Source of the DNA: Isurus oxyrinchus
Taxonomy: Eukaryota
DNA: 64,000 bases
Reading direction: 5' to 3'
Assembly: GCA_026770705.1 (NCBI GenBank)
Contig: JANJGN010000121.1
Location: 124,001-188,000 of the forward strand
Positions 2,360-63,366 of the stretch are shown here, one piece after another (the first letter of the stretch is position 1; every line of letters begins with the position of its first letter). The notes beneath the pieces are model-generated. The model was not told the DNA's origin. It ran no database searches and saw only the letters and a program-made list of their open reading frames with translations. The translations under genes were made by a program, and so were the position numbers.

Positions 2360-2476
2360 TTATAAATTCCCATAAACAGAATCCTCAGCAAATTCACAGT
2401 TTGCGTAAAGATCATCATCTGTATCAGGATTGACTCCGTGGTTAGATTTCATTTCCAGATCCTTCTCATCTTTCTT
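2360..2476 (-). CDS. Gene A terminal exon (KKDEK...DDDLYANCEFAEDSVYGNL*)
   Basis: ttacag acceptor, 38 codons then TAA; two Tyr motifs in acidic context; conserved in gene D. Confidence 0.8.
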   Translation of the reverse strand, partial: KKDEKDLEMKSNHGVNPDTDDDLYANCEFAEDSVYGNL

Positions 2477-5400
2477 CTGTAATAGAAACAGAAATGATCA
2501 GAGTGACAATCAGAGTGATCAGTGTTTAGTATTATTGATCCAAATTGAAAATTCCACCCACAATAGATACATTAGTTATTGACACTGAACAGGGTTTGAT
2601 TATTGATTCTGAACGGGGTTTGATTATTGATTCTGAAGAGGGTTTGATTATTGATTCTGAACGGAGTTTGATTATTGATTCTGAACAGGTTTTGATAATT
2701 GATTCTGAACGGGGTTTGATTATTGATTCTGAATGGGGTTTGATTATTGATACTGAACAGGGTTTGATTATTGATACTGATCGGGGTTTGATTATTGATT
2801 CTGAACGGGGTTTGATTATTGATTCTGAACGGGGTTTGATTATTGATTCTGAACGGTGTTGGGTGTGAGTTTGGTTGGGTTTGGGAGTGACTGTATAAAA
2901 CATTGCAGATACAGGACTGGAGCAGCCATATCAATAACCAGGCTACTGGAGCAGCTGAGAGGCTGGGGATCCTGTGGTGTGTGACTCACCTGATTCCTCA
3001 AAGCCCAACCACGCTCACAGTTTTCATAAACAGGACCTCGATATTCATCAACATGATGGTTCGATTTGATTCCTGCTTTCCCCTCGCCTCTCTTCTGTAA
3101 TAGAGATGGAAATGGACAGTGTGACAATCAACACGATGTGTATTCGGTGTTGGGTTTGATTATTGGGGAGAGAGTTCCAGATTTCCACTCCCCTTTGTGT
3201 GAAGAAGTGCTTCCTGACATCACCCCTGAACGGCCTGGCTCCAATCTGAAGTTCCAGCCCCCTTGTTCTGGACTCCACCCGACCCCCACCACCCACCCCC
3301 ACCCGAGGGAATAGCTTCTCTCTATCGACCCTATCGAGTGTTTAATCAGTTTGAATCTCTCAGTTAGATCCCTCCTTAATCTCCTAGACCTGAGGGAATA
3401 TAATCGTAGACTGTGTGTAACCTGTCTGCACAATTTACCCAGAAAGATGTTCTGTACAACAGACTTGAGTCTCACACCCAGATCTCAATAATCAGTAGAA
3501 ATCTTTCAAAGGCATCAATCATTGGAATCAGTCTTTATAAAGTCACAACATCAACAAAGGATGATGTTGGTTGTGGAAGGAATTCCAATCGTTCCGTTAC
3601 TTACCCAGGACCTTTCCGAATGCTCGCCTGGGGAGGAACTGCCCACACGCTCTGCTTGGGCTGAATGACCTCTTCCTGTGCTGCTCCCTCTGTGTATTTA
3701 ATGAGAAAGGGTTGATGTGTCTCTGTGAGTCAAATCAGGAATTGGGGAACAATTGTGAAAACCGTTTCACTGAAACGTAGGGCCTTAGTGTTGTGTTGTA
3801 AGCAAACTGTTAACCCTTTGTGACCTGAGTGTGTCGTGATTCCTGTGGAAAGCTGAACAGTCGTTGAGCGAGTTTCAATTCACTGCTTACTCCAGGTGTT
3901 GAGGTGTATCTTCTGATGGAGCAGATGTTGCTCAGCGCTCCTTAAAATTGTGAGAGACTGAACAACGTGTAAGAGGACGAGAGAGAGAATGAGAAGGAGA
4001 GCATTAGTGGAGATTGGGGAGAGAGCGAATAAGACAGAGAGAGAATGAGAAGGAGAGCATAAGTGGAGGTAAGAGAGAGAGTGAGTTAGACACTGAAAAT
4101 GGAAAGAGATTGCATTCACTAACAAAAGAAATGTCTTCATTTATATATCCCCTTTCACATCCTCAGGAAGTCACAAGGTATTTTATGGTCCAGATCAACA
4201 CTGCCTGATACAGGACTGAGTTGTGAAACATTGAGTGTTGGATGAGATGTTAAACAATGAGTGAACATCAAAGCTCTTCAGGGGTTGTGAAGGGTTTTGG
4301 GTTGTGAAAGGTGCTATAGAAATGCAAGTTCTTTCTATAAGGAGAGAAGGTTGAAGAAAACATGTTCAAAAACAACCAATTAAACCTTCACACTTACTTT
4401 CTCACACACTTGAAGATGAAGAATCCACTCAGTCCAACACTCAAACAGATTCCAGCTCCAAGCAATCCTGCTTTCCATTCATTGGAATCTCGCCCTGTAA
4501 AATCAGCCAATGAATGACTCCGGTACAGTTTGAGAATGGTTCCCTGTGTACATGTAGTAATTCTGAACTTGTGAAGTGATATTGTCTATGCATGAAAGGT
4601 CTATACAAATAACATATATCTATGTAATATTTATTGATAATATCCATGTACATGCAGGTTTCTATAAGGAGGATTCACATATAACAGAGGTGCCAAGCTG
4701 CTGAGGTGACACACAGGACTACATACACACCAAACAGTGGAAACAACATGCTATAGACAGAGCAAAGCGATCCCACAACCAACGGGTCAGATCTAAGCTC
4801 TGCAGTCCTGCCACATCCAGTCATGAATGGTGATGGACAACTAAAGATCTAACAGGAGGAGGATGTTCCACAAATATCCCCATCCTTAATGATGGGGGAG
4901 CTCAGCACATCAGTGCAAACGACAAGGCTGAAGCATTGGCAACCATGTTCAGCCAGAAGTGCTGAGTGGATGCTCCATCTCGGCCTCCTCCAGAGGGTCC
5001 CAGCATCACAGATGTCAGCTTTCAGACAATTCGATTGACTCCACGTGACATCAGGAATCAGCTGATGATACTGGATACAGCAAAGACTATTGGCCCTGGC
5101 AACATCCCGGCAACAGGAAATAATGTGGCTACAAATGCGGGTAAGAGGCTGGGAACTCTGTGGTGAGTAACTCACCTCCTGACTCCCCAAAGCCTGTCCA
5201 CCATCGGACAAGGCACATTTCAGGAGTGTGATGGAATAATCTCCACTTGGCTGGATAAGTGCAGCTCCAACAACACTCAAGAAGCTCGACACCATCCAGG
5301 AGCAGCTTGTTTGAGCGACAGCCCATCCACCAGCATAAACATTCATACCCTCCACCACTGGCACACAATGGCAGCAGTGTGTGCACCATCTACAAGATGC

Positions 5401-8400
5401 ACTGCAGCAACTCACCAAGGCTCCTTCGACAGCACCTTCCAAACCCTTAACCTCTTCCACCAAGACAGTTCCAAGTCAGTGTGGTGTGTGATTTGGAAGC
5501 GAACGTGAGGTGGTGGTCTGCCCTGGGACTTGGAAATATATCGGCCGTTCCTTCACCATCACTGGGACAAAATCCTGGAACTCCCTCCCTAACAGCACTG
5601 TGGGTGTGCGTACACCACATGGACTGCAGTGGTTAAAGAAGGCAGCTCACCACCACATTCTCAAGGGGCAGTTACAGATGGGCAATAATTTCTGGTCTTG
5701 TCAACACTACCCACATCCCATGAGCTAATAAAAACAGAATGTTTATGAACCCGTCCACTGCTCCATGTTCATTCTCTGCCACACACTGATAATCTCCAGT
5801 GTCCCTGGATATAACGTGAGGAATCACCAACCACAGCTCATTGTTGGAACTTGTTCTGTTCATTGGGACATTAAGATGTCGCCACGTCAGGTTAGAAGCT
5901 GGGAAGCTCTCGACAGAGCAGATTATCACTGCAGAATTCCCCTCAATTATATTGATCCATGAAGTGTTAATCATATCATGAAAAGTAATTGAGAGATTCT
6001 GTGGTGCATCTAAAAACGAATAAAGATCAGTTACTTACATTGACTGTGAAGCACTTTCAGAGACCCTGACAATGTTACAGGTGTAATATCAATCCTTCAC
6101 CACAAAGCACATAATTCAGGCAGACTCTTCAGTTCAGTACTGAGGGAGTGCTGCACTGTTGGAGGGTCAGTACTGAGGGAGTGCTGCACTGTTGGAGGGT
6201 CAGTACTGAGGGAGTGCTGCCCTGTTGGAGGGTGAGTACTGAGGACCTGCTGTACTGATGGTGGGTGGGTACTGTGAAAGCTTCACTGCCGCATAGTCAG
6301 TACTGAGCGAGTACTTCACTGTCGGAGGGTCAGCACTGAGGGAGTGCTGCACTGTTGGAGGGTCAGTATTGAGGCAGTGCTGCACTGTTGGAGGGTCAGT
6401 ATTGAGGCAGTGCTGCACTGTTGGAGGGTCAGTACTTAGGGAATGCTGCACTGTCGGAGGGTCAGTACTGGAAGAGTGCTGCATTGTCGGAGCGTCAGTA
6501 ATTAGGGATCTCTGCACTGTTGGAGGGTCAGTACTGAGGCAATGCTGCACTGTCGAAGGGTCAGTACTGGAAGAGTGCTGCACTGTCGGAGGGTCAGTAA
6601 TTAGGGAGCTCTGCACTGTTGGAGGGTGATAAGACCATAAGACCACAAGACATCAGAGCAGAAGGAGGCCATTCGGCCAATCAACTATGCTCCGCCATTC
6701 AATGACACCATGGCTGATCTGACAATCCTCAACTCCACTTTCCTGCCTCTTCCCCATAGCCTTTGATTCCCTGACTGATTAAAAAACTGTGTATCTCAGC
6801 CTTGAATATAATTAATGACCCAGCCTCTGCAGCTCTCTGCAGTAAAGAATTCCACACATTCACTACCCTCTGAGAGAAGAAACTCCTCATCTCTGTCTTA
6901 AATGGGTGACCCCTTACTCTGAGATTATGCCCTCTGGTCCTAGACTCTCCCACAAGGGGAAACAACCTCTCAGCATCTACCCTGTCAAGCACCCTAAGAA
7001 TCTTATATGTTTCAATAAGGTCACCTCTCATTCTTCTAAACTCCAATGAGTACAGGCCCAGCCTACTCAACCTCTCCTCATATGAAAATCCCTCCATTAC
7101 TGGGATCAACCTAGTGAACCTTCTCTGGACTGCCTCCAATGCCAGTACATCTTTCCTTAGATAAGGGAACCAAAACTGCTCACAGTATTCTAGGTGTGGT
7201 CTAACTAGTGCCTTGTATAGTTTTAGCAAGATTTCCCTATTTTTATACTCCATTCCCTTTGAAATAAAGGTCAGCATTCCAAATACTATGTGCATTTAAG
7301 TAAAGAGCCATTAATTTTGTCTTTTTATCATTTCCCCCCCTCTGACACTATTTGCTGATGTATTTTTATGTTTGGACACTGTGTCCCTTCCTGTCACACA
7401 CTGGGTATCATTGCCAAAACAGCTATCCTGCAATGCTAATAAATCCTTTTGGTTTGTAACTGTACATATACCTTCTCCAGAAACATTCGCCCCACACTCT
7501 ATTTAGTTTAAAGCCAATAGTGAGGTAGTGCAGCACTGTCAAAGGGTCAGAACTGAGGGAGTGCTGCATGTGGGAGGGTCAGTACTGAGGGAGTGCTGCA
7601 CTGTGGGAGGGTCAGTACTGAGGGAGTGCTGCATGTGGGAGGGTCAGTACTGAGGGAGTGCTGCACTGTGGGAGGGTCAGTACTGAGGGAGTGCTGCATG
7701 TGGGAGGGTCAGTACTGAGGGAGTGCTGCACTGTCAGAGGGTCAGTACTGAGGGAGTGCTGCACTGTGGGAGGGTCAGTACTGAGGGAGTGCTGCACTGT
7801 GGGAGGGTCAGTACTGAGGGAGTGCTGCATGTGGGAGGGTCAGTACTGAGGGAGTGCTGCAGGTGGGAGGATCAGTACTGAGGGAGTGCTGCACTGTCAG
7901 AGGTTCAGTACTGTGGAAGTGCTGCACTGTGGGTGGGGGGTAGATTCAGTTCTGTGGAAGTGCTGAACTGTTTGAAGGTCTCGACCGAGGATCTGCTGTA
8001 ATTTCAGAGGGTCAGTCAGGAGGGAGATATGAAATGTTGGATTTTCAGTCCTGAGGGAGCACTGCAGAGTTGGAGGGTCAGCAGTGAAGGAGTGCTGCAC
8101 TGTCGGAGAGTCAGTACTGAGGGATTGTTTCATTATTGGAGGGTCAGTACTGAGGCAGTGCTGCACTGTCAGAGGGTCAGTACTGAGGGAGTGCTGCAAT
8201 GTCAGAGGGTCAGTACTGAGGGAGAGCTGCAATTTCAGCAGGTCAGTACTGAGGGAGTGCTGCACTGTCAGAGGGTCAGTACTGAGGGAGTTCTGCACTG
8301 TTGGAGGGTCAGTACTGAGTGATTGCTGCACTATTGGAGGATCAGTACTGAGGGAGTGCTGCACTGTCAGGCGGTCAGTACTGAGGGAGTGCTGCACTGT

Positions 8401-11400
8401 CAGGCGGTCAGTACTGAGGGAGTGCTGCATTGTCAGGAGGTTAGTATATTGTGAGTGATGCTCTGCTCTATCAGCTTCTTGGATGGAAAAAAAAGCTCCA
8501 GTGTTAATGTTCAGAAACTGTCATTAACTGTTTTCTGGTCAGTGTTTTTCCGTAAATTACAGATGATCTGGTTCTCATCAGAATACCTTTCTGTGGGATC
8601 CTGCTGTGCATAATCTAGACTGTTCCAGCGAATGTATAATGAAGGATGTCCATACTTACCTTGTACAGTTAGTACGAGGGTACGCTCCGATGAAACAGAT
8701 GGATATCTCACTCTGCAGCTGAGTGTGTGTCCGTGGTGTTTGAGTGATGGGATCAGGGTCAGAACAGAAGTATAGGTCAGAGTGACACCATGCTGAGTTA
8801 CAGTGTTTGAGACTGATCCAGGTACATCAGTGGGGATGTCCCAGGTTAAGACAGGTGCTGCTGTTCCATTGCACGTTGTGTTGAAGGTGCAGCTTACATC
8901 CACAGGCTTTCCTGCAATAATTTCAGCAGGGAATATCATGGGTTTATCTGTGAAATCTAACAGACGGAGAATGGATCCTTTTAGAGAAATATAACGTGAA
9001 GCATCAGTTCAAATAGAAATCACAATCCCACAAGAGAAAGCACTTTTACAAGGATGATATCAGAACTGAGAGATTACAATGATCAGGAAATTATTTTAAA
9101 CAGGATTAGAGAGATCGATGAGAGTGGATAACCTGATAACTTTGATGGACACAGTCAATACATTTAATCATTGATATTAAAGTGAGTATTAGAGGTTGCT
9201 TTAGGACTGAACTGGAAGCTATCAGCAGGTTATTGAGAATCAGACATTGTGTTATAATAAGCTGTGTTTTGTGTTAATATGTAAACGTCACAGTTTGTGT
9301 TAATTCCCATTGAGTGTTGAATGTGAATTGTTGAGTAATTATAACACAGCACTTACCAGAAACATGAAGCTGGGTTACAGGGTAATAGTTATGGCTCGGA
9401 CCATTGTCAAATTCTATCCTGAAAAAATAAGGTCCTGCATCTTCCCGTCTGATGTTGTTTATAATCAGGGAACAGTCGCCATCTTTCAGGTCTCCAGACA
9501 GCCGGGTCCGATGGTGGAACCGTGGTAACTCGTGACTGTGATCCTTGGAGTGAAAGGCTATGGGAGCCCAGGGAATCTGTTTCTCGTTATTAAACCAGAC
9601 TCCAACTCGTGGTCGGCTTTCCAAATGTGATGGATAACTGTAATGACATGGAATCTGTACACACGAATCTTCCTGTGCTGTCACCTCTCGTGGAGTGTCA
9701 CCTTTCCACTCTTGTGACAGTCCAACTGGGGAGAGAAATATCAATATTTAACTCTGGATGTTTTTTCGATCCACTAGACTCGATATCCACCCCCTCCATC
9801 ACTGGGGCACAGTGGCTGCAGTGTGGACCATCTACAGGACACACAGGGATCTCCCCAAGGTTTCACAATGGATGGAAGAGAATCCTGGACACAGGAGTGG
9901 ACAAGTTCATTCTACATTGGCTCATGGTCCTCAGGACCCTGTTTAGTGAAACCAGTCTTCCACCCAACACAGTGTCTCCAAGTCATGTGTTTTTCAAATT
10001 ATCCGTTCATGGGATGTGCCCAGCATTTATTACCCATCCCATGTCCATCAGAGGCATTTAAGAATCAATTGTATTGCTGTGGGTTTGGAGTGACATGTAG
10101 GCCAGACTGGGTAAGGGTGGAGATTTCCTTCCCAGAAGGGGATCAGTGAACCAGGCTTTTTAATCCGATTCATCTGCTGTGATGGGATTCATACCCAGGG
10201 CCCCAGAGCATCACCCTGGGCCTCTGGAATACTAGCCCAGTGACAATGCCTCTCTACTGCCGCTTCCCCTTAGTGAAGCCAGTCTTCCACCCAACACAGA
10301 CTCTACAAGACCCACCCATTGAGATCCATTCAGTGCTGATTTACAAGACAGGACAATGGATTAGGAGCCCTCAGAACTCCCCCCATTATCACCGTCATGA
10401 ATCACTAATTAGCCTAACATTCCTGTCTGCTCTTCAACACAGCTGATTGGCTAATCTGATTCAATCTGATTGGTGCACTTTGTATCTTCATTGTCTAAGG
10501 AATCTCTTTGGATCCTCATTGTCTGAGGAATCTCTTTGGATCCTTATTGTTTGAGGAATCACTTTGGACCCTCATTGTCTAAGGAATCTCCTTGGATCCT
10601 CATTGTCTGAGGAATCTCTTTGGATCCTGATTGTTTGAGGAATCACTTTGGACCCTCATTGTCTAAGGAATCTCTTTGGATCCTCATTGTCTGAGGAATC
10701 TCTTTGGATCCTCATTGTCTAAGGAATCTCTTTGGATCCTCATTGTCTAAGGAATCTCTATGGATCCTCATTGTCTAAGGGATTATTTCTGATCCAAACC
10801 CCATATTTTTGTATTGTTGATTCCGATGCAGCATTGTAGACTGACTTGTCCCCAAGCTCAGCACTGACCCTACTCCAGCAGACCCTGTGAAACACACTAA
10901 CAAAGTGCCTCTAGCCTGAGCTCTGCATGTGTCGGAGGTGCCGCTGTGGTGGGTTCATGACTTTCAAAGATGGTGTTGTTTATTTGTTCAAACTGAACTG
11001 GGCCCCACATGAAACGCTGCTACCAGAAACTTCTTGTTCCCTGTACTTCTAAAACATCTGTGATTCAGCAGGATTCTGAAGATTTGCTGACAAGGGTCTT
11101 AAATTGTCTGATTGTTGAATGATACAACACAGGAGGAGCTCATTTGACCCATCGTGCATGTGCTGGCTCTTTCCCAATTCCTCTCCAGCACCTTTCGCAC
11201 ATCCCTGCAAATTTCCCTTCAAGTATTTATCCAGTTCCCCTTCTGAAAGTTCCTGTTGAATCTGCTTCCACCGGCCTTTCAGGCAGTGAGTCAATGGTCT
11301 CTCTCTGAGCTGCAAAGTGCTCAGATTCTGTGAAATTTAAACTGTGCAGCAGGTCAGAGACACTCATGATAACTCAGAATATTTGTCACCTTTACACACG

Positions 11401-11994
11401 GACAGCTTTACCTTCCTTCTCTCTTTCAGTTATCTTGCTCCCTTATTGAAGTATCTAGCATGGTGAGAATGGACAGGAAGTGTGACACTGAACAGCCTGT
11501 CTATTCTAGGAGCTGCTGTGTTGTCTTCATGGGAAATTTTGAATAAAGGCAGCAAAGGACACAAATTTCAGGCCATTGCTATCGGAGACCTTGCAGCAGG
11601 ATAGACTTCATCCCCCAGTTTTTATCTTTGCTTCTCTACTCAACCCATCACTCCCCATCGCTCACTGACCATCGTCCGATAGCACCTGAATTTTAAGATT
11701 CTGCTCTCGCTGCTACAAACCTGCCTATCCCTGTACACTCCTCCAGCCCCTACAACCCTCCAAGGCCTCTGCTCTCCTCCAATTCTGCTGTCAGACAGGG
11801 AGTCAGTGTATATCAGTGAGCACAGGGGTGATGGGTGAATGGGACTTGGTCTGAGTTTGTGCACTGGCTCACTGCTGAATCGATTCCCAATCACAGCTCA
11901 AAAAGAATGATCCTTTACAGAGACTATTAACATTAAATCTGATGATGATATTACCTTGGAGAAGTGACAGGAGGAAGTAAGATTTCCCGATCAT
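2360..11994 (-). CDS. Siglec/MAG/CD22-like receptor gene A (multi-exon span: SP, V-set, C2, Ig, TM, 3 cytoplasmic exons)
   Basis: Exons 11955-11994, 9357-9725, 8660-8956, ~5744-6009, 4398-4494, 3605-3689, 2990-3094 and 2360-2476 have compatible phases and GT-AG borders, except the Ig3 donor, which is deleted. Confidence 0.85.
2575..2855. repeat. 24-bp minisatellite (GGGGTTTGATTATTGATWCTGAAC), ~11-12 units
   Basis: Direct tandem units in the last intron of gene A. Confidence 0.95.
2990..3094 (-). CDS. Gene A cytoplasmic exon 2 (KRGEGK...GPVYENCERGWALRNQ)
   Basis: ttacag acceptor, CAG|GTGAGT donor, 105 nt phase 0-0, YEN motif; conserved in gene D. Confidence 0.7.
3605..3689 (-). CDS. Gene A putative cytoplasmic exon 1 (85-nt repeated cassette)
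   Basis: cacag acceptor, TGG|GTAAGT donor; open in phase 2-0 (GSSTGRGHSAQAERVGSSSPGEHSERSW), the phase needed between the TM and next exon. Confidence 0.6.
4398..4494 (-). CDS. Gene A transmembrane exon (RDSNEWKAGLLGAGICLSVGLSGFFIFKCVRK)
   Basis: ttacag acceptor, AA|GTAAGT donor, 97 nt phase 1-2, uncharged hydrophobic stretch. Confidence 0.9.
4790..5722 (+). mobile_element. Degenerate CR1/L2-type LINE RT fragment
   Basis: IPILNDGGAQH..., RLGTL..VTHLLTPQSLSTI.., APTTLKKLDTIQ motifs with stops; paralog at 59310-60245. Confidence 0.8.
5744..6009 (-). CDS. Gene A membrane-proximal Ig exon, splice donor deleted
   Basis: DAPQNLS...EGNSAVIICSVESFPASNLTW...DTGDYQCVAENEHG; ~34 bp including the GTGAGT donor present in gene D (60271-60297) is missing; read-through stops at 5672. 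Confidence 0.85.
6130..6627. repeat. 33-bp satellite (GAGGGTCAGTACTGAGGGAGTGCTGCACTGTCG), SINE-derived
   Basis: Tandem units; further arrays at 7530-8435, 15080-15370, 24140-24385, 28990-29345, 45800-46350, 52200-52390, 60690-61110 and 62120-63365. Confidence 0.92.
6628..7290 (-). mobile_element. CR1 LINE 3' end (RT C-terminus and 3'UTR)
   Basis: LYKALVRPHLEYC.QFW.PYLRKD...LGLYSLEFRRMRGDLIETYKI...TRGH; short tandem tail near 6630. Confidence 0.93.
7530..8435. repeat. 33-bp satellite array
   Basis: Tandem units giving TVQHSLSTDPP-type ORFs. Confidence 0.92.
8660..8956 (-). CDS. Gene A C2-set Ig exon (Siglec domain 2)
   Basis: 297 nt, phase 1-1; SCTFNTTCNGTAAPVLTW...SVLTLIPSLKHHGHTLSCRV; the extra Cys fits the V-C2 interdomain disulfide; G|GTAAGT donor. 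Confidence 0.93.
9357..9725 (-). CDS. Gene A Siglec-type V-set Ig exon
   Basis: 369 nt, phase 1-1; CVQIPCHY double Cys, GVWF, GDLKDGDCSL (E-strand Cys), DAGPYFFRIEF with the Arg equivalent to the sialic-acid-binding residue and no F-strand Cys. Confidence 0.95.
10488..10780. repeat. 28-bp minisatellite (CTCATTGTCTAAGGAATCTCTTTGGATC), ~10 units
   Basis: Direct tandem units in the SP-V intron of gene A. Confidence 0.92.
11955..11994 (-). CDS. Gene A signal-peptide exon (MIGKSYFLLSLLQ/V)
   Basis: ATG at 11994, hydrophobic core, CAAG|GTAA phase-1 donor; upstream pyrimidine tract and AG at 12037-12038. Confidence 0.85.
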
Positions 11995-12427
11995 TGTCCA
12001 CTCCCAGATATTCCATCCACTTCTCACTCTCAAACTCTGAAAGAGAAAGGAGTTAATGAGACCTCACCTCTTGTCCGACAGCTCTCGAGAGATCAGAACT
12101 GCTTTTAGACAATGTATTCACTGACTAATTTGATTCTCTGTGGGATGATAGGTGCTCTGCAGAGAGATACAAGGCTTTAAGAATGAAAAACAATGAAGGG
12201 CTTGCATTTCTATAGCACCTTTCACCAGCTCAGGGCATCCTATTTTCCTCATCCCTTGAGCTAGAAAGATGTTCTGCACAACAGACTTGAGCCTCACACC
12301 CAGATCTCAATAATCAGTAGAAATCTTTCAAAGGCATCAATCATTGGAATCTGTCTTTATAAAGTCACAACATCAACAAAGGACAGTGTTGGTGGTGGAA
12401 GTGAATTCCAATCGTTCCGTTACTTAC

Positions 12428-12512
12428 CCAGGACCTGTCCGACTGCTCGCCTGGTGAGGAACTGCCCACACGCTCTGCTTGGGCTGAATGACCTCTTCCT
12501 GTGCTCCTCCCA
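12428..12512 (-). other. Putative 5'UTR exon (85-nt cassette) upstream of gene A SP exon
   Basis: AG acceptor and GG|GTAAGT donor, no ATG; same cassette at 145-229, 3605-3689, 51824-51908, ~52472-52556 and 58181-58265. Confidence 0.55.
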
Positions 12513-14010: not shown

Positions 14011-14062
14011 AGACCATGCTGTACAGAAGAGATTTGACAGGAGCAGCAAGTGTTTTACTTAC

Positions 14063-18486: not shown

Positions 18487-18517
<31 letters not shown>

Positions 18518-19457: not shown

Positions 19458-19608
19458 NNNNNNNNNNNNNNNNNNNNNNNNNNNNNNNNNNNNNNNNNNN
19501 NNNNNNNNNNNNNNNNNNNNNNNNNNNNNNNNNNNNNNNNNNNNNNNNNNNNNNNNNNNNNNNNNNNNNNNNNNNNNNNNNNNNNNNNNNNNNNNNNNNN
19601 NNNNNNNN
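19458..19608. other. Assembly gap (N run) within a TG microsatellite
   Basis: Run of N. Confidence 1.
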
Positions 19609-23365: not shown

Positions 23366-23614
23366 TCAGTTTTTCTGGAACCTGATCTGTGCGTATTCCG
23401 TGTCCTCGCTCCTGTGCACAGTCCTGTCACCGCCGGGCAGCTTTGAAAAGTTGATGTTGGCGTAGAAAAGCTCGTCGGGTTTGTCGGGGTTCCCATGTCC
23501 AACATCGCCTCCCACTGGACCTTCAGAGAGACCCCGGGGAGCTGGGGTCTCCCCCTCACTAGTTGTGTCTCTGGTTGTGTTCCGGGGCTCAGTAATCAGC
23601 ACGTTCTGTTTACC
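23366..23614 (-). CDS. Gene B terminal exon with ITIM (LFYANI) and ITSM (TEYAQI)
   Basis: ctgtag acceptor, phase 0, ...DELFYANINFSKL...EDTEYAQIRFQKN*, the typical Siglec tail layout. Confidence 0.92.
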   Translation of the reverse strand, partial: GKQNVLITEPRNTTRDTTSEGETPAPRGLSEGPVGGDVGHGNPDKPDELFYANINFSKLPGGDRTVHRSEDTEYAQIRFQKN

Positions 23615-28036: not shown

Positions 28037-28787
28037 CTAAAAGAAATAAAGATTTTAATGTGAGCAAGCATAGTGCACAGCAAGACTCCATGCATCATCT
28101 CTCTGTATCTGATGTTGGAATGCTTTTCCAGGTACCTTCCCTCATGAAAAATTACTGTCATATTTATAATGGACACTTCCTATGTAAACTGTCACACTGC
28201 AGTTGCTTCCTCCCACCAGTAGAGTTGCTAACACTCTAGAATGAAAGAAACATCCCTTAACACTCTCAAGATGTCCCCAAGGGCTTGACAGGCAATGAAT
28301 TGTATTTGATCAATGGAGCACTGAGGGCTAAATCTACATTTCTCCGTTCAGGAGGTTGCTCATCCAATTCAGGGTCTTGCTGATCTGGAGTTTACCTTCC
28401 TTCAACACAGAATCGGAGCTGACACCGAGACTCCAGTGCAGCCCTGAGAGAGAAGAGGGACCTCACGCGTGTTTATGTGTATGTGTTTGTGTTTCTACAT
28501 ATGTGAGTATGTTTGTGTGAGTATGCATGCATGTGTCTGTGTGTGCATGTGTGTATGTGTTTGCGCAAATGTGCGTGTGTCTTTGTGTATATTTCTGTGC
28601 ATAAGTGAATGTGTGTACATGTGTATGTGTATGTGTGTGCACCTGTGAGTGTGTGTGTGTGAGTTGAGTGTGTGTATGTTTCTGTGTAGGTTTTTGCACG
28701 TGTATGACTGTGTGTAAATGTGCATGTATGTGCCTACACATGAGTGTGTGTGTATGTGTGTGTGTGTGTGTGTACATGTGTGCATGT

Positions 28788-34050: not shown

Positions 34051-34109
34051 CTCCATTGAAGTAATATTCTGCTTTTTGATGTTCAGTCCCCTCCCTTGTT
34101 GCCTTTCAG

Positions 34110-47650: not shown

Positions 47651-47777
47651 TGTCCTGGAATGCCTCTCTGATACGAAGGTGATTCTAACCAGGACACTGA
47701 CCTGTTTCATTACACTTAACCCAACATCACACGTTATTTGTCCGCACTGACTGACCAGATTGTTGCTGTACAAAGCT

Positions 47778-47917
47778 TCAAACAGTCTGTCGACTTCCTT
47801 TCACTGTTTGTCTCTCCCAGACACAGACTCCAGCGATAGTGATAACCACAGCCACAAGGAATATCACAGCTCGTATTCCCAGGATCAGGATCACGTGCAG
47901 AATCTCTCCTCCACTGT
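47778..47917 (-). CDS. Gene C TM/terminal exon with intramembrane Arg (SGGEILHVILILGIRAVIFLVAVVITIAGVCVWERQTVKGSRQTV*)
   Basis: ttctctag acceptor, phase 1 matching the Ig donor at 49582; Arg codon at 47871-47873; stop after a ~13-aa tyrosine-free tail. Confidence 0.85.
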
Positions 47918-49581
47918 CTAGAGAACACACAGAAAGAAATCATCACTGACTCTCCGCTTTCAATCTCTCACTCTGGCTGAACAATCAAGCTTCATATCAC
48001 TGCAACATTTGCTGTAATATTGACCCATCCACTGGGATTCAATGTGGAATGAATGTTTTCATTGTCAACACTCTAAGAGTGGACAATCGGAACTTTCCCC
48101 TTAGCGTAGAACATTGGTGAGAATGGATCATTGTGCTGTTGGACTCCCTGTCCAATGTTTCTCTCCATCACTGTGTACAGGATTGTGCTGTAGAAAATTC
48201 TGGAAACGTTTAGTGCAGGGTTGAAATCCATCTCGGACGTGTGTGCGAATCAGGGAGGATCGAGATGGACTCCCCCACGGACTTACACCCCCCGCTTAAT
48301 AAACAGTTCCAATCTTTACCCAGAGAGAGGGGAGAATGTGGAACTCACTCCCACAGGGAGTGGTTGAGGTGAACAGTATCGATGTATTTAAGGGGCAGGA
48401 GGGTCGGTAACCAGAGGGACACAGATTGACGAACCGGAGGGGGAGATGAGGAGAATTTGTTTTGACAGAGCGAGTTGTTGTCATCTGGAAGGTGCTGCCT
48501 GAAAGGGCAGCGGAAGCAGATTCAATAGGAACTTTCAAAAGGGAAATTGGATAAACACTTGAAGGAGGAAGATGGGGGCAAAGTGGAGTGGTGGTTAGTG
48601 GATCTGATTGGATAGAACATTGAAAGACCTGGCACAGGCTCAATGGGCTGAATGGCCTCCTCCTGTGCTGTATCATTCTCCGCTTCCATGATCTCTCCCC
48701 CAGTCAGTAACCACTCCAGATCCCTCTTGAAGGTGACAGAGAAACAGCAACCACCACACCCACTGACAGCACATTCCCGAGGATCACTGCTCTCTGGGAA
48801 AAGATGAACTCCCCAACATCCAGCCTATTCCTGCTTCCTGGAGAGTGTAAACACTTCAGGGAGGCGCTGAGGAAGTTTTCAATAAAATGAATTATCAAAT
48901 CTACCGTTTGAGAAATAATTGAATTCCGATGAACTCCCAGCTTGTGTAGCAAACTGGGAAGTAGATTTGCTTGAAAAGCTGGGAAACACAAGGATTAAGT
49001 GCTACAATGCCACCACTGGTGGGAGGCTGTAACTACAGTGTGACGTTTACATAGGCAGTCATCACTATAAACAGGGGCTTTGGACATAATGGGCACGGAA
49101 ATAGTGAGAACAGGATGTAAGCTTTTCATCAGCAGGAATTCTCTTACTAAACCTCTCCACCTCTCTCTTACTCTCAGATTCACAAAAAAAATCACATAAT
49201 CAGATAAAGAGGAGTTGGGACTAGTTATTCGTCAAAGGGTTAGGTTTCAGGTAGCTCCTTAAAGGGAGAGAGAGAGTTGGAGAAGCAGAGAGTATCTATG
49301 AGTGCCTCTATGCATCTGAGTGTTTGTACGAGTAATTTCCATATTCTTCCATAAATATGAATGGGAACACAAATCCCAGAATTCAGCCCACGCTCCAGTG
49401 CAGTACTGAGGGAGGTCAGGTAACCCATGAGGGAGTATTGTGCTAGTGTGTTTGTTTGTGAGTGTGTCTTTGTGTGTGGTCATATATGTGTGTCTGCACG
49501 TGTCTATTTAGGTCTGTACGTTTGAGGGTGTTTGTGTAGTATTCGAATCTGAGAGAGATGTTGAAGTCTGTGTACACTCAC

Positions 49582-49734
49582 ATTCCACAGTAATGGTTAT
49601 GAACCCCTCCACTGCTCCATGTTCATTCTCTGCCACACACTGATAGTCACCAGTGTCCCTGGATGTAACGTGAGGAATCACCAACCACAGCTCATTGTTG
49701 GAACTTCTTCTGTTCATTGGGACATTAAGATGTC
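49582..49734 (-). pseudogene. Gene C 3' half of the membrane-proximal Ig exon
   Basis: HLNVPMNRRSSNNELWLVIPHVTSRDTGDYQCVAENEHGAVEGFITITVE with intact GTGAGT donor; 5' half replaced by unrelated sequence. Confidence 0.85.
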
Positions 49735-50257
49735 AGGGAGGGAATCAAGAACCCCATATGCACAATTACCAACAGAAAGTGAACAACAATTTATACTTAA
49801 TGGGAAGACAGTGCTGATTGGTTGGCAAGTGGTCTCTGATAGGTGGAGGTGTTGCCGTGGAGAATGGTGTGTGCGAGATGTAAAGTTTAGACAGCTTGTC
49901 TCTTCATTCAGCAATAATCAAATAAAGATCAATTAACTTCTATCGACTGTGAAGCACTTTGAGAGGACTGAGAATGTGGATACTGAGAATGGGCTGCACT
50001 GTCAGAGGGTCAGCGCTGAGGGAGTGCTGATGTAGAATGAAAGATGTCGGTACTATTAATGCTTTTCATCATTGATATTAAAGTGATTTTTAGAGGTTGC
50101 TTTAGGACTGAACTGGAAGCTATCACCAGGTTATTGAGAATCAGACAGTGTGTTATAATAAGCTGTGTTTTGTGTTATTATGTAAACGTCACAGTTTGTG
50201 TTATTTCCCATTGAGTGTTGAATGTGAATTGTTGAGTAATTATAACACAGCACTTAC

Positions 50258-50631
50258 CAGAAACGTCAAGCTGGGTTACAGGATAGTAGCTGTAACTATT
50301 CCTGCTGTCAAACTCTAATCTGAAAAAATAAGGTCCTGCATCTTCCCGTCTGATGTTGTTTATAATCAGGGAACAGTCGCCATCTTTCAGGTCTCCAGAC
50401 AGCCGGGTCCGATGGCGGAATCTTTGATCCCTGTGACTGTGACCCTCGGAGTGAAAGGCTATAGACCATTTAGGCTGTGGGTTCCCATCTATTCCTTTCA
50501 ACCAGATTCCGCACGTGATCTCCCTACGAAATTTGATAAGTAACTGTAATGACATGGAATCGGTACACATGAACCTTCCTGTGCTGTCACCTCTCGTGGA
50601 GTGTCACCTTTCCACTCTTGTGACAGTCCAA
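50258..50631 (-). pseudogene. Gene C V-set exon with frameshift
   Basis: 374 nt (not 3n); CVPIPCHY in one frame, GIWLK...GDCSL...GPYFFRLEF in another; shift near 50511-50515. Confidence 0.88.
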
Positions 50632-51334
50632 CTGGGGAGAGAAATATCAACATTTGACTCTGGATAGTTTGTAGATCCACTAGACTCAATATCCACCCCC
50701 TCCATCACTGGGGCACAGTGGCTGCAGTGTGGACCATCTACAGGACACACAAGGAACTCCCCAAGGTTTCACAACGGATGGAACAGAATCCTGGACACAG
50801 GAGTGGACAATTTCATTCTACATTGGCTCATGGTCCTCAGGACCCTGTTTAGTGAAGCCAGTCTTCCACCCAACACAGTGTCCACAAGACACACAGGGAA
50901 ACTGTGTAAATATCTCATCTCTCAACACTGAATGGGCTGAGCTTCAATTTAACTTTCAGTATTGTTAAATTTCCTTATTGTGGTTGCTATGGTGAAACTG
51001 TGCAGGAAGTGTGAGGGCTGGACTCTCTGTCTATTCTCACTGCAGCTGTGATGTGGTCGTGGTGATTCTCAGTAAAATGAAACCCTCTGATCTCCTCAAT
51101 CCCCGAGGTTTAGGGAGTGAATTCCAGAGCTCAGGCCCCAGGCAGCTGAAGGCACGGCCGCCAGTATTGGAGTGATGGGAATCGGGGGATGGTCAAGAGG
51201 CCAGAATTGCAGTAACACAGAGATCTGGGAAGTTGATTGGTTGCGTTGCAGGAGGTTACAGAGATAAAGAGATAAGAATGATCTTTTACAAAGACTGTTA
51301 AATATATATCTGTCCAAGCTGACGATGATATTAC

Positions 51335-51395
51335 CTTGGAGAAGTGACAAGAGGAAGTAGATTTCCCGATCATTGTCCACTCCCAGATATTCCAT
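51335..51395 (-). CDS. Gene C signal-peptide exon (in frame only from upstream ATG: MEYLGVDNDREIYFLLSLLQ)
   Basis: Paralog of 11955-12036, 1 nt shorter; the ATG used in gene A (here 51373) is out of frame. Confidence 0.65.
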
Positions 51396-51823
51396 CCACT
51401 TCTCACTCTCAAGCTGTGAAAGAGAAAGGAGTTAATGAGACCTCACCTCTTGTCCAGCACCTTTCGAGAGATCAGAACTGCTTTTAGACAATGTCTTCAC
51501 AGACTAATTTGATTCTCTGTGGGATGATAGGTGCTCTGCAGAGAGTTACAAGGCTTTAAGAAAGACAAACAATGAAGGATTTGCATTTCTATAGCACCTT
51601 TCACCACCTCAGGACATCCCAAAGCTCATGTCCCTGCACTTCCCTCATCCATTGAGCTAGAAAGATGTTCTGTACAACAGACTTGAGCCTCACACCCAGA
51701 TCTCAATAATCAGTAGAAATCTTTCAAAGACATCATTCATTGGAATCTCTCTTTATAAAGTCACAACATCAACAAAGGACGGTGTTGGTGGTGGAAGTGA
51801 ATTCCAATCATTCCGTTACTTAC

Positions 51824-51965
51824 CCAGGACCTGTCCGACTGCTCGCCTGGGGAGGAACTGCCCACACGCTCTGCTTGGGCTGAATGACCTCTTCCTGTGC
51901 TGCTCCCTCTGTGTATTTAATGAGAAAGGGTTGATGTGTCTCTGTGAGTCAAAATGAGGAAGTTG
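51824..51965 (-). promoter_or_regulatory. 85-nt cassette exon with adjacent AP-1 (TGAGTCA) and PU.1/ETS (GAGGAAGT) motifs upstream of gene C
   Basis: TGAGTCAAAATGAGGAAGT at 51945-51963; also at ~52593-52611; ETS motif alone at 272-285. Confidence 0.45.
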
Positions 51966-53144
51966 GATCAAAGTGACAGACCAGCTCATGTTTTGAGATG
52001 TTGGTGAACTGTTAACCCTTTGTGTCCTGACCCTGTGTTGATATTTCTGCTCACAGGTGGACAGTCATTGACCAGGAGTTTCTCCTGTGGGTCAGTGGGT
52101 TTCACAGCCAAATTCAGGGGGTCAGAATGTTGTGGGATTCAAGACCCCATTCAGGGGACGTCTGCCCCACAGAGTAGACTGAAACTGCCCAGTGTCAGTC
52201 CTGAGGGAGTGCTGCACTGTCGGATGGTCATTACTGCACTATTGTATGGTCAGTACTGAGGGAGATCTCCACTGTTTGAGGGTGAGTACTGAGGGAGTGC
52301 TGCACTGTCAGAGGGACATTAATCAGGGAGTGCTGCAATGTTGGAGGATCAGTACTGAGGGAGTGCCGCACTGTTGAAGGGTCAGTATTAAGGTGCTGAT
52401 TTACAAGACAGGACAATGGATTAGGAGCCCTCAGAACTCCCCCCGTGATTTCCAATCATTCCGTTACTTACCCCGGACCTGTCCGACTGCTCGCCTGGGG
52501 AGGAACTGCCCACACGCTCTGCTTGGGCTGAATGACCTCTTCCTGTGCTGCTCCCTATTTGTGTTTAATTAGAAAGGGTGGATGTGTCACTGTGAGTCAA
52601 AATGAGGAAGTGCTTGGTACCAAGTGAGAAAGATGCTCTTTGCCTCGCACTGTTAGAAAACTGTTAACCCTTTGCGTGCCAAGAATGTTTTTGAGGGGCA
52701 TTGACTGTTCACATGCAACAAGCTCGAGGGGTTGACTGGGCCTCCTCCTGTTCCTGTGTAACAGGCACGAGGAGGGTGAATAGGCCTCCTCCTGTTCCTG
52801 TGTGACAGGCTCGAGGGGCTGAATAGGCCTCCTCCTGTTTCTGTGTAACAGGCTCATGGGGCACAATGGGTCTCCTCCTCTTTCTGTGTAACAAGCTTGA
52901 GGGGCTGAATGGGCCTCCTCCTGTTCCTGTGTAAAAGGCTCGAGGGGCTGAATGGGCCTCCTCCTGTTCCTGTGTAACAGGCTCATGGGGGCTGAATGGC
53001 CTCCTTCTCTCACTGTGTACCAGGCTCGAGGGGCTGAGTGGGCCTCCTCCTGTTCCTGTGTAAAAGGCTAAAGGGGCTGAATTGGCCTTCCCCAGTTCCT
53101 GTGTACCAGGCTCGAGTACATTAGGAGCATCATTGGAAGCAGCA

Positions 53145-55974: not shown

Positions 55975-56091
55975 TTATAAATTCCCATAAACAGAATCCT
56001 TGGCAAAATCACAGTTTGCGTAAAGATCATCATCTGTATCAGGACTGACTCCGCGGTTAGATTTCATTTCCAGATCCTTCTCATCTTTCTT
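55975..56091 (-). CDS. Gene D terminal exon (…DDDLYANCDFAKDSVYGNL*)
   Basis: 117 nt, paralog of 2360-2476 with Tyr motifs conserved. Confidence 0.8.
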   Translation of the reverse strand, partial: KKDEKDLEMKSNRGVSPDTDDDLYANCDFAKDSVYGNL

Positions 56092-59000
56092 CTGTAATAG
56101 AAACAGAAATGATCAGAGTGACAATCAGAGTGATCAGTGTTTAGTATTATTGATCCAAATCGAAAATTGCACCCACAATACATACATTAATTATTGACAC
56201 TGAACAGGGTTTGATTATTGATACTGAACGGGGTTTGATTATTGATTCTGAACGGGGTTTGATTATTGATACTGAACGGGGTTCGATTATTGATACTGAA
56301 CGGGGTTTGATTATTGATACTGAACGGGGTTTGATTATTGATACTGATGGGATTTGTTTATTGATTCTGAACGGGGTTCGATTATTGATACTGAACGGGG
56401 TTTGATTATTGATACTGAATGGGGTTTGATTATTGATACTGAACGGGGTTTGATTATTGTTACTGAACGGGGTTTGATTATTGACACTGAACGGGGGTTG
56501 ATTATTGATACTGAACGGGGTTTGATTATTGATACTGAACGGGGTTTGATTATTGATACTGAATGGGGTTTGATTATTGATTCTGAATGGTGTTTGATTA
56601 TTGATACTGAACGGGGTTTGATTATTGTTACTGAACGGGGGTTGATTATTGACACTGAACGGGGGTTGATTATTGATACTGAACGGGGTTTGAATATTGA
56701 TACTGAACGGGGGTTGATTATTGATACTGATCGGGGGTTGATTATTGATACTGAACGGGGGTTGATTATTGACACTGAACGGGGTTTGATTATTGATTCT
56801 GAACGGGGTTTGATTATTGATTATGAACGGGTTTTGATTATTGATACTGAACGGGGTTTGATTATTGACACTGAACGGGGTTTGATTATTGATTCTGAAC
56901 GGGGTTTGATTATTGATACTGTACGGGGTTTGATTATTGATTATGAACGGGTTTTGATTATTGATACTGAACGGGGTTTGATTATTGATTATGAACAGGT
57001 TTTGATTATTGACACTGAACAGGGTTTGATTATTTATACTGAACGGGGTTTGATTATTGATCCTGAACGGAGTTTGATTATTGATCCTGAAAGGGGTTTG
57101 ATTATTGATACTGAACTGGGTTTGATTATTGACATTGAACGGGGTTTGATTATTGATTCTAAACGGTGTTTGATTATTGAACCTGAACGCAGTTTGATTA
57201 TTGATACTGAACGGGGTTTGTTTATTGATTCTGAACAGTGTTTGATTATTGATTCTGAAAGGGGTTTGATTATTGATACTGAACGGGGTTTGATTATTGA
57301 TTCTGAACGGTGTTTGATTATTGATTCTGATCGGGGTTTGATTATTGATACTGAACGAGGTTTGATTATTGATACTGAACGGGGTTTGATTATTGATTCT
57401 GATCGGGGTTTGATTATTGATTCTGAACGGTGTTGGCTGTGAGTTTGGTTGGGTTTGGGAGTGACTGTATAAAACATTGCAGATACAGGACTGGAGCAGC
57501 CATATCAATAACCAGGCTACTGGAGCAGCTGAGAGGCTGGGGATCCTGTGGTGTGTGACTCACCTGATTCCTCAAAGCCCAACCACGCTCACAGTTTTCA
57601 TAAACAGGACCTCGATATTCATCAACACGATGGTTCGATTTGATTCCTGCTTTCCCCTCGCCTCTCTTCTGTAATAGAGATGGAAATGGACAGAGTGACT
57701 ATCAACATGATGTGTATTCGGTGTTGGGTTTGATTATTGGGGAGAGAGTTCCAGATTTCCACTCCCCTTTGTGTGAAGAAGTGCTTCCTGACATCACTCC
57801 TGAACGGCCTGGCTCCAATCTGAAGTTCCAGCCCCCTTGTTCTGGACTCCACCCGACCCCCACCACCCACCCCCACCCGAGGGAATAGCTTCTCTCTATC
57901 GACCCTATCGAGTGTTTAATCAGTTTGAACCCCTCAGTTACATCACTCCTTTAATCTTCTAGACCTGAGGGAATATAATCGTAGACTGTGTGTAACCTGT
58001 CTGCATAATTTAACCAGAAAGATGTTCTGTACAACAGACCTGAGCCTCACACCCAGATCTCAATAATCTGTAGAAATCTTTCAAAGGCATCAATCATTGG
58101 AATCTGTCTTTATAAAGTCACAACATTAACAAAGGACGGTGTTGGTGGTGGAAGTGAATTCCAATCGTTCCGTTACTTACCCAGGACCTGTCCGACTGCT
58201 CGCCTGGGGAGGAACTGCCCATACGCTCTGCTTGGGCTGAATGACCTCTTCCTGTGCTGCTCCCTCTGTGTGTTTAATGAGAAAGGGTTGATGTGTCTCT
58301 GTGAATCAAATCAGGAATTGGGGAACAATTGTGAAAACCCTTTCATTGAAACGTAGGGCCTTAGTGTTGTGTTGTAAGCAAACTGTTAACCCTTTGTGTC
58401 CTGACTCTGTGTCGTGATTCCTGTGTAAAGCTGAGCAGTCGTTGAGCGAGTTTCAATTCACTGCTCAATCCAGCTGTTGAGGTGGATCTTCTGAAGGAGC
58501 AGATGTTGCTCAGCGCTCCTTAAAAATGTGAGAGACTGAACAACGTGTAGGAGGATGAGAGAGAGAATGAGAAGGAGAGCATTAGTGGAGATAAGAGAGA
58601 GTGAATGAAACATGGAAAGAGGAAAGAGATGGCATTCACTAACAAAAGAAAGGTTTTCATTTATATAGCTCCTTTCACATCCTCAGTAGGTCACAAGGTA
58701 TCTTATGGTCCGAGTCAACACTGCCAGTTACAGGACTGAGTTGTGAAACAGTGAGTGTTGGATGAGATGTTAAACAGTAGGTGAACATCAAAACTCTTCA
58801 GGGGCTGTGAAGGGTTTTGGGTTGTGAAAGGTGCTATAGAAATGCAAGTTCTTTCTATAAGGAGAGAAGTTTGAAGAAAACATTTTCAAAAACAACCAAT
58901 TAAACCTTCACACTTACTTTCTCACACACTTGAAGATGAAGAATCCACTCAGTCCAACACTCAAACAGATTCCAGCTCCAAGCAATCCTGCTTTCCATTC

Positions 59001-60562
59001 ATTGGAATCTCGCCCTGTAAAATCAGCCAATGAATGACTCCGGTACAGTTTGAGAATGGTTCCCTATGTACATGTAGTAATTCTGAACTTGTGAAGTGAT
59101 ATTGTCTATGCATGAAAGGTCTATACAAATAACATTTATCTATGTAATATTTATTGATAATATCCATGTACATGCAGGTTTCTATAAGGAGGATTCACAT
59201 ATAACAGAGGTGCCAAGCTGCTGAGGTGACACACAGGACTACATACACACCAAACAGCGGAAACAACATGCTATAGACAGAGCAAAGCGATCCCACAACC
59301 AACGGGTCAGATCTAAGCTCTGCAGTCCTGCCACATCCAGTCATGAATGGTGATGGACAATTAAAGATCTAACAGGAGGAGGATGTTCCACAAATATCCC
59401 CATCCTTAATGATGGGGGAGCTCAGCACATCAGTGCAAACGACAAGGCTGAAGCATTGGCAACCATGTTCAGCCAGAAGTGCTGAGTGGATGATCCATCT
59501 CGGCCTCCTCCAGAGGGTCCCAGCATCACAGATGTCAGCTTTCAGACAATTCGATTGACTCCACGTGACATCAGCAATTAGCTGATGATACTGGGTACAG
59601 CAAAGGCTATTGGCCCTGGCAACAACCCAGCAACAGGAAATAATGTGGCTACAAGAGCGGGTAAGAGGCTGGGAACTCTGCGGTGAGTAACTCACCTCCT
59701 GACCCCCCAAAGCCTGTCCACCATCGACAAGGCACAAGTCAGGAGTGTGATGGAATAATCTCCAATTGCCTGAATAAGTGCAGCTCCAACAACACTCAAG
59801 AAGCTCCACACCATCCAGGAGCAGCTTGTTTGATCGACAGCCCATCCACCAGCATAAACATTCATACCCTCCACCACTGGCACACAATGGCAGCAGTGTG
59901 TGCACCATCTACAAGATGCACTGCAGCAACTCACCAAGGCTCCTTCGACAGCACCTTCCAAACTCTTAACCTCTTCCACCAAGACAGTTCCAAGTCAGTG
60001 AGGTGTGTGATTTGGAAGCGAACTTGAGGTGGTGGTCTGCCCTGGGACTTGGAAATATATTGGCCGTTCTTTCACCATCACTGGGACAAAATCCTGGAAC
60101 TCCCACCCTAACAGCACTGAGGGTGTACCTACACCACAGGGAATGTAGTGGTTAAAGGAGGCAGCTCACCACCACCTTCTCAAGGGGCAGTTACAGATGG
60201 GTAATAATTTCTGGTCTTGTCAACAATGCCCACATCCCATGAGCTAACAACAAGAGAACGTTCAATTCTGTGTAACTCACGTTCCACAGTGATGGTTATG
60301 AACCCCTCCACTGCTCCATGTTCATTCACTGCCACACACTGATAGTCTCCAGTGTCCCTGGATGTAAGGTGAGGAATCACCAACCACAGCTCATTGTTGG
60401 AACTTGTTCTGTTCATTGGGACATTAAGATGTCGCCACGTCAGGTTAGAAGCTGGGAAGCTCTCGACAGAGCAGATTATCACTGCAGAATTCCCCTCAAT
60501 TATATTGATCGATGAAGCGTTAATCATATCAAGAGAATTAATTGAGAGATTCTGTGGTGTGT
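55975..60562 (-). CDS. Siglec-like gene D, duplicate of gene A (3' part; 5' exons presumably beyond the window)
   Basis: Exons 60281-60562 (Ig, intact donor), 58918-59014 (TM), 58181-58265, 57564-57668 (YENC) and 55975-56091 (LYANC/SVYGNL*) are all open and phase-compatible. Confidence 0.87.
56190..57430. repeat. 24-bp minisatellite, ~50 units
   Basis: Same unit as 2575-2855; source of the 453- and 362-aa repetitive ORFs. Confidence 0.95.
57564..57668 (-). CDS. Gene D cytoplasmic exon 2 (YENC motif)
   Basis: 105 nt, paralog of 2990-3094. Confidence 0.7.
58181..58265 (-). CDS. Gene D putative cytoplasmic exon 1 (85-nt cassette)
   Basis: Open in phase 2-0: GSSTGRGHSAQAERMGSSSPGEQSDRSW. Confidence 0.6.
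58918..59014 (-). CDS. Gene D transmembrane exon
   Basis: Same sequence as 4398-4494. Confidence 0.9.
60281..60562 (-). CDS. Gene D membrane-proximal Ig exon
   Basis: 282 nt phase 1-1, tttcag acceptor, C|GTGAGT donor. Confidence 0.92.
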
Positions 60563-63365: not shown

Positions 63366-63366
63366 T

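Follow-up and report, generated by a model that had tools for sequence, protein, structure and literature searches.

A 64,000-nt window of Isurus oxyrinchus DNA (contig JANJGN010000121.1, positions 124,001-188,000, forward strand) carries a cluster of receptor exons related to the Siglecs, the sialic acid-binding immunoglobulin (Ig)-like lectins. We read this window as a slice of a large, fast-turning-over Siglec-type multigene family governed by birth-and-death dynamics and holding no working receptor pair, a reading to which we assign a probability of about 0.75. One gene in the window is complete (gene A), one is cut by the window edge (gene D), one is a headless tail (unit B), and one is internally deleted (gene C). 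A first-pass annotation of the same DNA had proposed a working set of inhibitory, activating, and adaptor-type receptors with a shared ectodomain module. With unit B headless and gene C internally deleted, the window offers no intact pair, and it does not show the working set. The shared module fares better, in that a near-identical Ig exon does recur, but a V-set is missing from unit B, both C2 domains are missing from gene C, and gene A cannot splice its own copy of the exon. No inhibitory partner with a near-identical binding domain was found, the membrane-proximal Ig exon being all that is shared, and because unit B is without a V-set no inhibitory/activating pair with a common binding head can be shown in the window.

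Organization of the window

Exons were mapped by tblastn with relatives combined with a reading of the splice sites; they were searched singly, with whole RefSeq relatives as stand-ins for the full-length proteins. Every receptor exon lies on the minus strand. The inventory of the window (G+C content, 46%) amounts to two leader exons, two minus-strand V exons, one first-C2 exon, one exon encoding an arginine-bearing membrane span (the Arg-membrane exon), and one exon with an immunoreceptor tyrosine-based inhibitory motif (ITIM), and no non-Siglec marker gene was recognised within it. One of its two gaps, at 19458-19608, sits in an intergenic microsatellite; the other, at 27613-27746, starts 8 nt past the donor of exon B2, so close that it must fall within the B2-B1 intron. 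Neither gap breaks a coding exon, though the B2-B1 intron may not be continuous. Poly(A) signals occur 0.8-1.1 kb past every last exon and are compatible with all of the rival readings alike. The receptor exons are as follows.

11955-11994, minus strand: leader of gene A, coding portion of the exon (MIGKSYFLLSLLQ and 1 nt more, phase 1); 100% match to the N-termini of shark homologues, and the homologous leader-to-V splice is present in RNA contigs
9357-9725, minus strand: gene A V-set exon, 369 nt, phase 1-1, intact, with the Siglec cysteine pattern and the YFFR arginine
8660-8956, minus strand: gene A first C2 exon (C2a), Siglec domain-2 type, 297 nt; matches Pfam C2-set_2 and is the sole copy in the window
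5715-6009, minus strand: gene A copy of the repeated Ig exon, a pseudo-exon with a 13-nt insertion near its 3' end and the homologous donor out of phase
4398-4494, minus strand: gene A uncharged transmembrane exon, placed by tblastn with relatives and by splice sites
3605-3689, minus strand: gene A cytoplasmic exon, 85 nt
2990-3094, minus strand: gene A optional cytoplasmic exon, 105 nt, phase 0-0, with VYENC; a homologous stretch is found in Chiloscyllium P0007
2360-2476, minus strand: gene A last exon, LYANC, 7 residues, VYGNL, stop; spacing like that of an ITAM (immunoreceptor tyrosine-based activation motif)
27755-28036, minus strand: unit B repeated Ig exon, copy B2, from blastn and alignment; gap 8 nt past the donor
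26654-26935, minus strand: unit B repeated Ig exon, copy B1, from blastn and alignment
25740-25836, minus strand: unit B uncharged transmembrane exon
24597-24678, minus strand: unit B cytoplasmic exon
23369-23614, minus strand: unit B last exon, with ITIM LFYANI and immunoreceptor tyrosine-based switch motif (ITSM) TEYAQI, tyrosines 23 residues apart
51335-51395, minus strand: gene C leader exon, with a 1-nt deletion relative to A; GT..AG joint 51335-50631 (X17, X18) and a C-specific spliced contig (X6)
50258-50631, minus strand: gene C V-set exon, 374 nt and frameshifted in the assembly, 375 nt and open in run contigs
49582-49734, minus strand: remnant of the repeated Ig exon in gene C, limited to its 3' half, with no acceptor and the first Ig cysteine missing
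47781-47917, minus strand: Arg-membrane exon with a 12-residue tyrosine-free tail and stop, 80% identical to a Scyliorhinus torazame Arg-membrane model
60281-60562, minus strand: gene D repeated Ig exon, intact
58918-59014, minus strand: gene D transmembrane exon, matching its gene A counterpart exactly over the stretch shown
55975-58265, minus strand: gene D tail exons (58181-58265, 57564-57668, and 55975-56091), with YEN, YAN, and YGN

Siglec identity and the wider family

The gene A V exon matches both the V-set and Ig_CD22 models of Pfam. When it was compared with the PDB by phmmer, the top 18 matches were all Siglecs (Siglec-5 at an expectation value (E) of 4.5e-15), the first non-Siglec appeared at E 2e-6, and the YFFR of gene A was aligned with the YFFR of Siglec-5 and Siglec-8. 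An AlphaFold (AF2) model of this V-set, built with 21 relatives, reached a predicted local distance difference test (pLDDT) score of 91, and a Foldseek search with the model placed Siglec V-sets at every rank from 1 to 46 with template modelling (TM) scores of 0.80-0.88, the first non-Siglec coming at rank 47. At the sequence level the unusual Siglec pattern, with two cysteines on the B strand, one on the E strand, none on the F strand, and an additional one in domain 2, is recognizable in CVQIPC and DCSL of the V exon and in SCTFNTTC of C2a, which aligns with SCMVPDNC of MAG. Cysteines C26 and C84 of the V-set are invariant in 22 relatives, and C2a matches domain 2 of MAG and CD33 (~1e-5), extra cysteine included. 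The F-strand arginine, the residue with which Siglecs bind the carboxylate of sialic acid, is variable across the family, being K, S, G, or E in some relatives. With both the PDB and the Foldseek rankings headed entirely by Siglecs, the first-pass assignment of the V-sets to this family is upheld, as is the statement that the V-sets of A and C keep the Siglec cysteine pattern and the F-strand arginine, which are seen in A as it stands and in C with the frame restored.

A HMMER search over 1.84 billion proteins returned 1177 matches, 30 of them below 1e-30. The named relatives are RefSeq predictions titled Siglec-10, -12, -13, CD33-like, or MAG-like and come from basking, great white, cat, bamboo, and zebra sharks, smooth-hound, sawfish, and stingrays; proteins with Siglec names that are more remotely related come from gar, arowana, arapaima, frogs, turtles, and mammals. 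The family is therefore already labelled in databases, by automatic names, and the cartilaginous fish that had been named as the host of this DNA agrees with the nearest proteins, which are those of sharks and rays. No literature was found on shark or ray Siglec clusters. Among 36 cartilaginous-fish representatives, 4 have an Arg anchor with a short tail, ~11 are of ITIM type, and ~7 carry tandem YxN motifs. The same three C-terminal types had been described for the window, and they are indeed there, as the LFYANI/TEYAQI exon, the Arg exon with its 12-residue tail, and the YEN/YAN/YGN motifs of A and D, all of which recur family-wide. The present locus adds a further member to a family with three signalling ends. 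YxN tails also occur in arapaima, gar, and turtle relatives, and the tandem YxN tail at ITAM-like spacing is conserved from rays to sharks.

These comparisons divide the earlier proposal of an independently evolved system into two parts. For the pairing it holds, the primate pairs being recent, but for the family it does not hold, since Siglec relatives extend from gar to mammals. The 23-residue tyrosine spacing of the unit B tail can be aligned, gap-free, with the tail of a turtle Siglec-like protein (E 0.002 for the pair), and an elephant-shrew Siglec tail is collinear with it in a match that is not significant. The occurrence of Siglec-named relatives from gar and bony-tongue fishes to frogs, turtles, and mammals, together with the turtle tail spacing, argues for an old shared lineage, which seems more likely than a fresh invention of the family.

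One complete gene and a headless inhibitory end

Gene A looks complete as a V-set, a C2 domain, a membrane anchor, and a YxN tail, and it is the only complete-looking gene of the window. The 13-nt insertion leaves its copy of the repeated Ig exon without a usable phase-1 donor, the only other in-phase GT falling within the codon of the second Ig cysteine, and in-frame splicing of this copy is therefore precluded. C2a joins the membrane exon in frame without the pseudo-exon, and the same layout is found in a model from the great white shark Carcharodon (XP_041037180). At 11955-12016 an upstream ATG (MEYLGVDNDRE...) does not share the frame of the signal peptide. The first candidate for the leader, MQALHCFSFLKP at 12171-12207 and 51550-51586, was dropped in view of the RNA joint at 51335 and of homologues that match MIGKSYFLLSLLQ.

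The exons of unit B are intact and in frame with good splice sites, and the introns preceding B1 and B2 show a likeness of 82%, which marks the two copies as a true tandem duplication rather than a haplotype copy. No leader, V-set, or C2a belonging to unit B was found within 20 kb upstream, and the minus strand from 28.1 to 47.7 kb has none of these exons. Upstream of B2, the 20 kb consist of microsatellites, retroelement pieces, and an antisense V relic. This relic (34100-34408, plus strand) derives from a different Siglec V-set, with sialoadhesin as its best PDB match (5.5e-10); it has Q in place of the key arginine and a stop after the next codon, and retroelement-like open reading frames (ORFs) follow directly, with a weak match to a gag aspartyl protease at 35140-35472.

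An internally deleted gene and the Arg-membrane exon

Homology between genes C and A comprises a leader block and a V block and stops at 50058, from which it follows that C2a and the 5' half of the repeated exon have been deleted in C. In the assembly the C V exon runs into a stop after 44 codons. When public contigs of sequencing runs were compared over 47700-51700, an extra base between 50511 and 50512 was found in a DNA contig of run X2 and in a contig of run X6, giving a 375-nt open exon; the restored exon has all of the Siglec features, including the key arginine. Either an error in the consensus or an allelic difference probably accounts for the frameshift. With the 1-nt deletion in the C leader the usual ATG no longer reads in frame, whereas one upstream of it does; a near-identical upstream ATG is where the great white shark model "isoform X2" begins.

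Including ~100 nt of flanking intron at either end, the V exons of A and C have 93-100% identity outside two patches at 50-70%. The divergence between the two exons (9357-9725 versus 50258-50631) is limited to these patches, which are short and bear indels, a pattern compatible with selection at the binding site as well as with patchy conversion in which a third copy was the donor.

A contig of run X6 with C-specific letters joins the leader donor at 51335 to a cryptic AG in the V exon, at 50524, and gene C is therefore transcribed. Use of the cryptic AG (50523-50631) removes 36 codons, both B-strand cysteines among them; a RefSeq isoform of great white shark likewise has a splice into its V exon, close to the corresponding position. 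The normal 51335-50631 joint is found in runs X17 and X18 (organism B), behind a leader of A-type sequence, and their contigs may for that reason derive from an A-like gene.

In the Arg-membrane exon the arginine lies at about residue 11 of the membrane span. Splicing of the C V exon directly to it would be in frame and would leave almost no stalk. Contigs of X17, X18, and X6 cover the exon and end at its acceptor; one X6 contig runs 27 nt past the acceptor into the 3' end of the A C2a with 2 mismatches. The resulting junction would be in frame (...TVQ, D, SGGEIL...), and the same junction occurs in Scyliorhinus XP_072325011. As there is no C2a-type exon between the V and membrane exons of C, this X6 transcript must come from the head of D or from a paralogue elsewhere. 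An intact activating copy probably lies elsewhere, beyond the exons of this window. A homologue search with the Arg-membrane region of P0006 gave 2 proteins from 7 candidates, which is not a census.

Probable homogenisation of the repeated Ig exon and the duplication history

The exon that unites the cluster encodes an I-set/Ig_3 domain of generic type, its matches including MAG and Siglec-8. It had been counted five times, of which four are full copies (A, B1, B2, and D) and the fifth, in C, is the 3' half only. A blastn search of 5700-6020 against the window matched 26665-26946, 27766-28042, and 60292-60573 at 94.7-95.7% identity (E ~1e-126) and a partial copy at 49587-49734. The exact exons B1 (26654-26935), B2 (27755-28036), and D (60281-60562) are each 282 nt long and of phase 1-1, with an AG acceptor and a GTGAGT donor. 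The full copies differ at 5-13 of 267 nt, and only 0-2 of the differing codons are synonymous. Between A/D and B, the introns become unalignable past ~20 nt from the exon; between A and D, the flanks are ~10% diverged. For A versus D, 1 synonymous difference was seen against ~6.5 expected, the latter a hand estimate (~65 synonymous sites x ~10% flank divergence). Because synonymous differences among the exons are so few despite unalignable introns and ~10% flank divergence, homogenisation is likely; the pattern points to gene conversion or exon exchange, probably followed by amino-acid change at the exon start.

What the window contains of gene D is the 3' portion of a segmental duplicate 90% identical to A; the head of the gene lies beyond position 64000. 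Relics of the 85-nt cytoplasmic exon of A and D are found at 145-231, 12428-12505, 51809-51916, and 52457-52552. Two such relics lie ~450 bp upstream of the A and C leaders, which suggests an old duplication unit that started mid-tail in one gene and reached into the next.

How such a locus might exchange its signalling ends can be outlined from the exon phases. The module order is a leader, a sialic-acid-type V-set, C2a, zero to many copies of the highly conserved repeated Ig exon, and one of three membrane/tail cassettes. The Ig exons are all of phase 1-1 and the membrane exons all start in phase 1, so that duplication, deletion, unequal crossing-over, and gene conversion can re-pair heads and tails in frame. 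To judge by their motifs, the ITIM and ITSM cassette would act in inhibition via SHP-type phosphatases, the Arg cassette would activate by way of an independent ITAM adaptor bound through the membrane arginine, and the YxN cassette would be a self-contained tail whose tandem motifs, at ITAM-like spacing, could serve for Grb2- or Syk-type docking.

Alternative explanations

That the defects described above are assembly artefacts in a satellite-rich, gapped region, and that the real locus is intact, we consider unlikely. All contigs over the site contradict the frameshift of the C V exon, the window has two gaps, one of which adjoins B2, and a very high-copy satellite (49978-50111) lies beside the deletion edge of C. 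Yet the gap near B2 is downstream of that exon and not at the expected position of a head, and the 20 kb upstream of B2, with their retroelements and antisense V relic, are assembled without gaps. Most of the DNA contig depth also backs the 1-nt deletion in the C leader, and the 13-nt insertion of gene A is not homopolymer-like. An account in which the joining of heads to tails takes place in the RNA, the C leader and V exon being spliced to the Arg-membrane exon or 22 kb onward to the exons of B, strikes us as quite improbable. It would explain why the B exons are intact, in frame, and headless, with the head of C the only one upstream on the same strand, and every junction would be in frame. 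In a variant the head of D may reach the Arg-membrane exon, and the 27-nt piece in X6 is 2 positions off the end of the A C2a, which is the divergence expected of the C2a of D. Against such splicing, the 15 of 78 joints listed include no joint of the C V exon to B2 or to the Arg-membrane exon, and models from other sharks give every tail type a head of its own. If RNA-level joining were true, one putative sialic-acid-binding head would yield both ITIM and Arg products, making this a switchable receptor and not a gene pair.

It is very doubtful that these are Ig receptors of Siglec ancestry that have moved past sialic acid binding to become paired receptors recognising proteins or pathogens. 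The variability of the arginine column across the family (K, S, G, E) would agree with this, as would the confinement of the A/C V divergence to two short patches, which would be expected under pathogen pressure if these face the ligand; however, A and C retain the arginine and the full Siglec cysteine pattern. Returning to the slice of a multigene family under birth-and-death dynamics, several points weigh against it. The run data are assembled contigs and not raw reads, placed at 93% likeness, so that paralogues cross-map and depth means little, and run X6, taken as RNA, holds intronic sequence too. The missing parts of B and C fall in repeat-rich, gap-adjacent sequence and could be assembly faults. 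Finally, the E-values of the V-set for Siglec-5, -7, -8, MAG, Siglec-10, and CD33 lie within ~4 orders of magnitude and the top Foldseek match is sialoadhesin; the V-set thus seems to fit the CD33-related, MAG-like, and Siglec-1-like subgroups about equally.

Comparison with known Siglec systems

In primates, Siglec-5/14 and Siglec-11/16 each pair an ITIM receptor with a short-tail form that has a basic membrane residue, and gene conversion keeps their ectodomains alike; these pairs are recent. The shark locus resembles them in its V-set with an arginine, its form with an ITIM and a distal motif, its short-tail form with a basic membrane residue, and its probably converted ectodomain exons. 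It differs in belonging to the shark lineage, in an independent origin of pairing, in many more genes, and in a third class with YxN tails, and within the window a V-set is missing from the inhibitory unit and the C2 exons from the activating gene. Gene A is like CD33 (Siglec-3) and the CD33-related Siglecs in its two-Ig V-C2 layout, and unit B is like them in its ITIM and distal TEY-type motif. Unlike in that group, gene A has YxN motifs in place of an ITIM, and its V-set is about equally near to Siglec-5, -7, -8, MAG, and sialoadhesin.

The site of the tail tyrosine Y828 in CD22 (Siglec-2) is a motif that we take to be YENV. This tyrosine recruits Grb2 (PMC3342095). The YxN tails of the window likewise offer a candidate Grb2 docking tyrosine in a Siglec tail. 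In CD22 the site accompanies ITIMs, whereas here the YxN motifs stand alone, in tandem and 7 residues apart, in an ITAM-like manner, and the gene A V-set is only distantly like that of CD22 (PDB phmmer E 6e-4). We know of no counterpart among the studied Siglecs for tandem YxN motifs without an ITIM.

Much nearer are RefSeq models of Carcharodon carcharias (CD33-like, XP_041037177-180), Scyliorhinus torazame (XP_072325011/XP_072326180), and Chiloscyllium punctatum (XP_072409577), which share the three tail classes and have 55-90% V-set identity; in Carcharodon a single contig carries both the ITIM and the YxN models. All of these are automatic predictions, and none is identical to the gene in the window. 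Fish genomes have been said to lack CD33-related, ITIM-bearing Siglecs and to hold only Siglec-1, CD22, MAG, and Siglec-15, on a teleost basis (PMC7226832). The shark and ray family would either put the inhibitory/activating Siglec design back to cartilaginous fish or mean that it has re-arisen there. It amounts to a natural experiment in the reshuffling of heads and tails, to which the window adds a clear view of gene birth and decay.

Repeats in and around the receptor genes

Arrays of a ~33-bp satellite occupy many introns and intergenic parts (6130-6630, 7510-8470, 45800-46350, 60690-61115, 62120-63370, and others), and one frame of the satellite reads as GSVLRECCTV repeats. A piece of satellite at 49981-50029 stands at the deletion edge of gene C, a spot at which the depth of DNA contigs is extreme. 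A 24-bp tandem array, ~285 bp long in A (2576-2860) and ~1250 bp long in D (56187-57434), occurs in the last intron. Reverse-transcriptase fragments and repeated ORF pieces resembling long interspersed elements (LINEs) lie between and within the receptor genes, at 42981-43364 (plus strand), 6732-7295 (minus strand), and 63471-63998 (minus strand), the first of these with a weak RVT_1 match.

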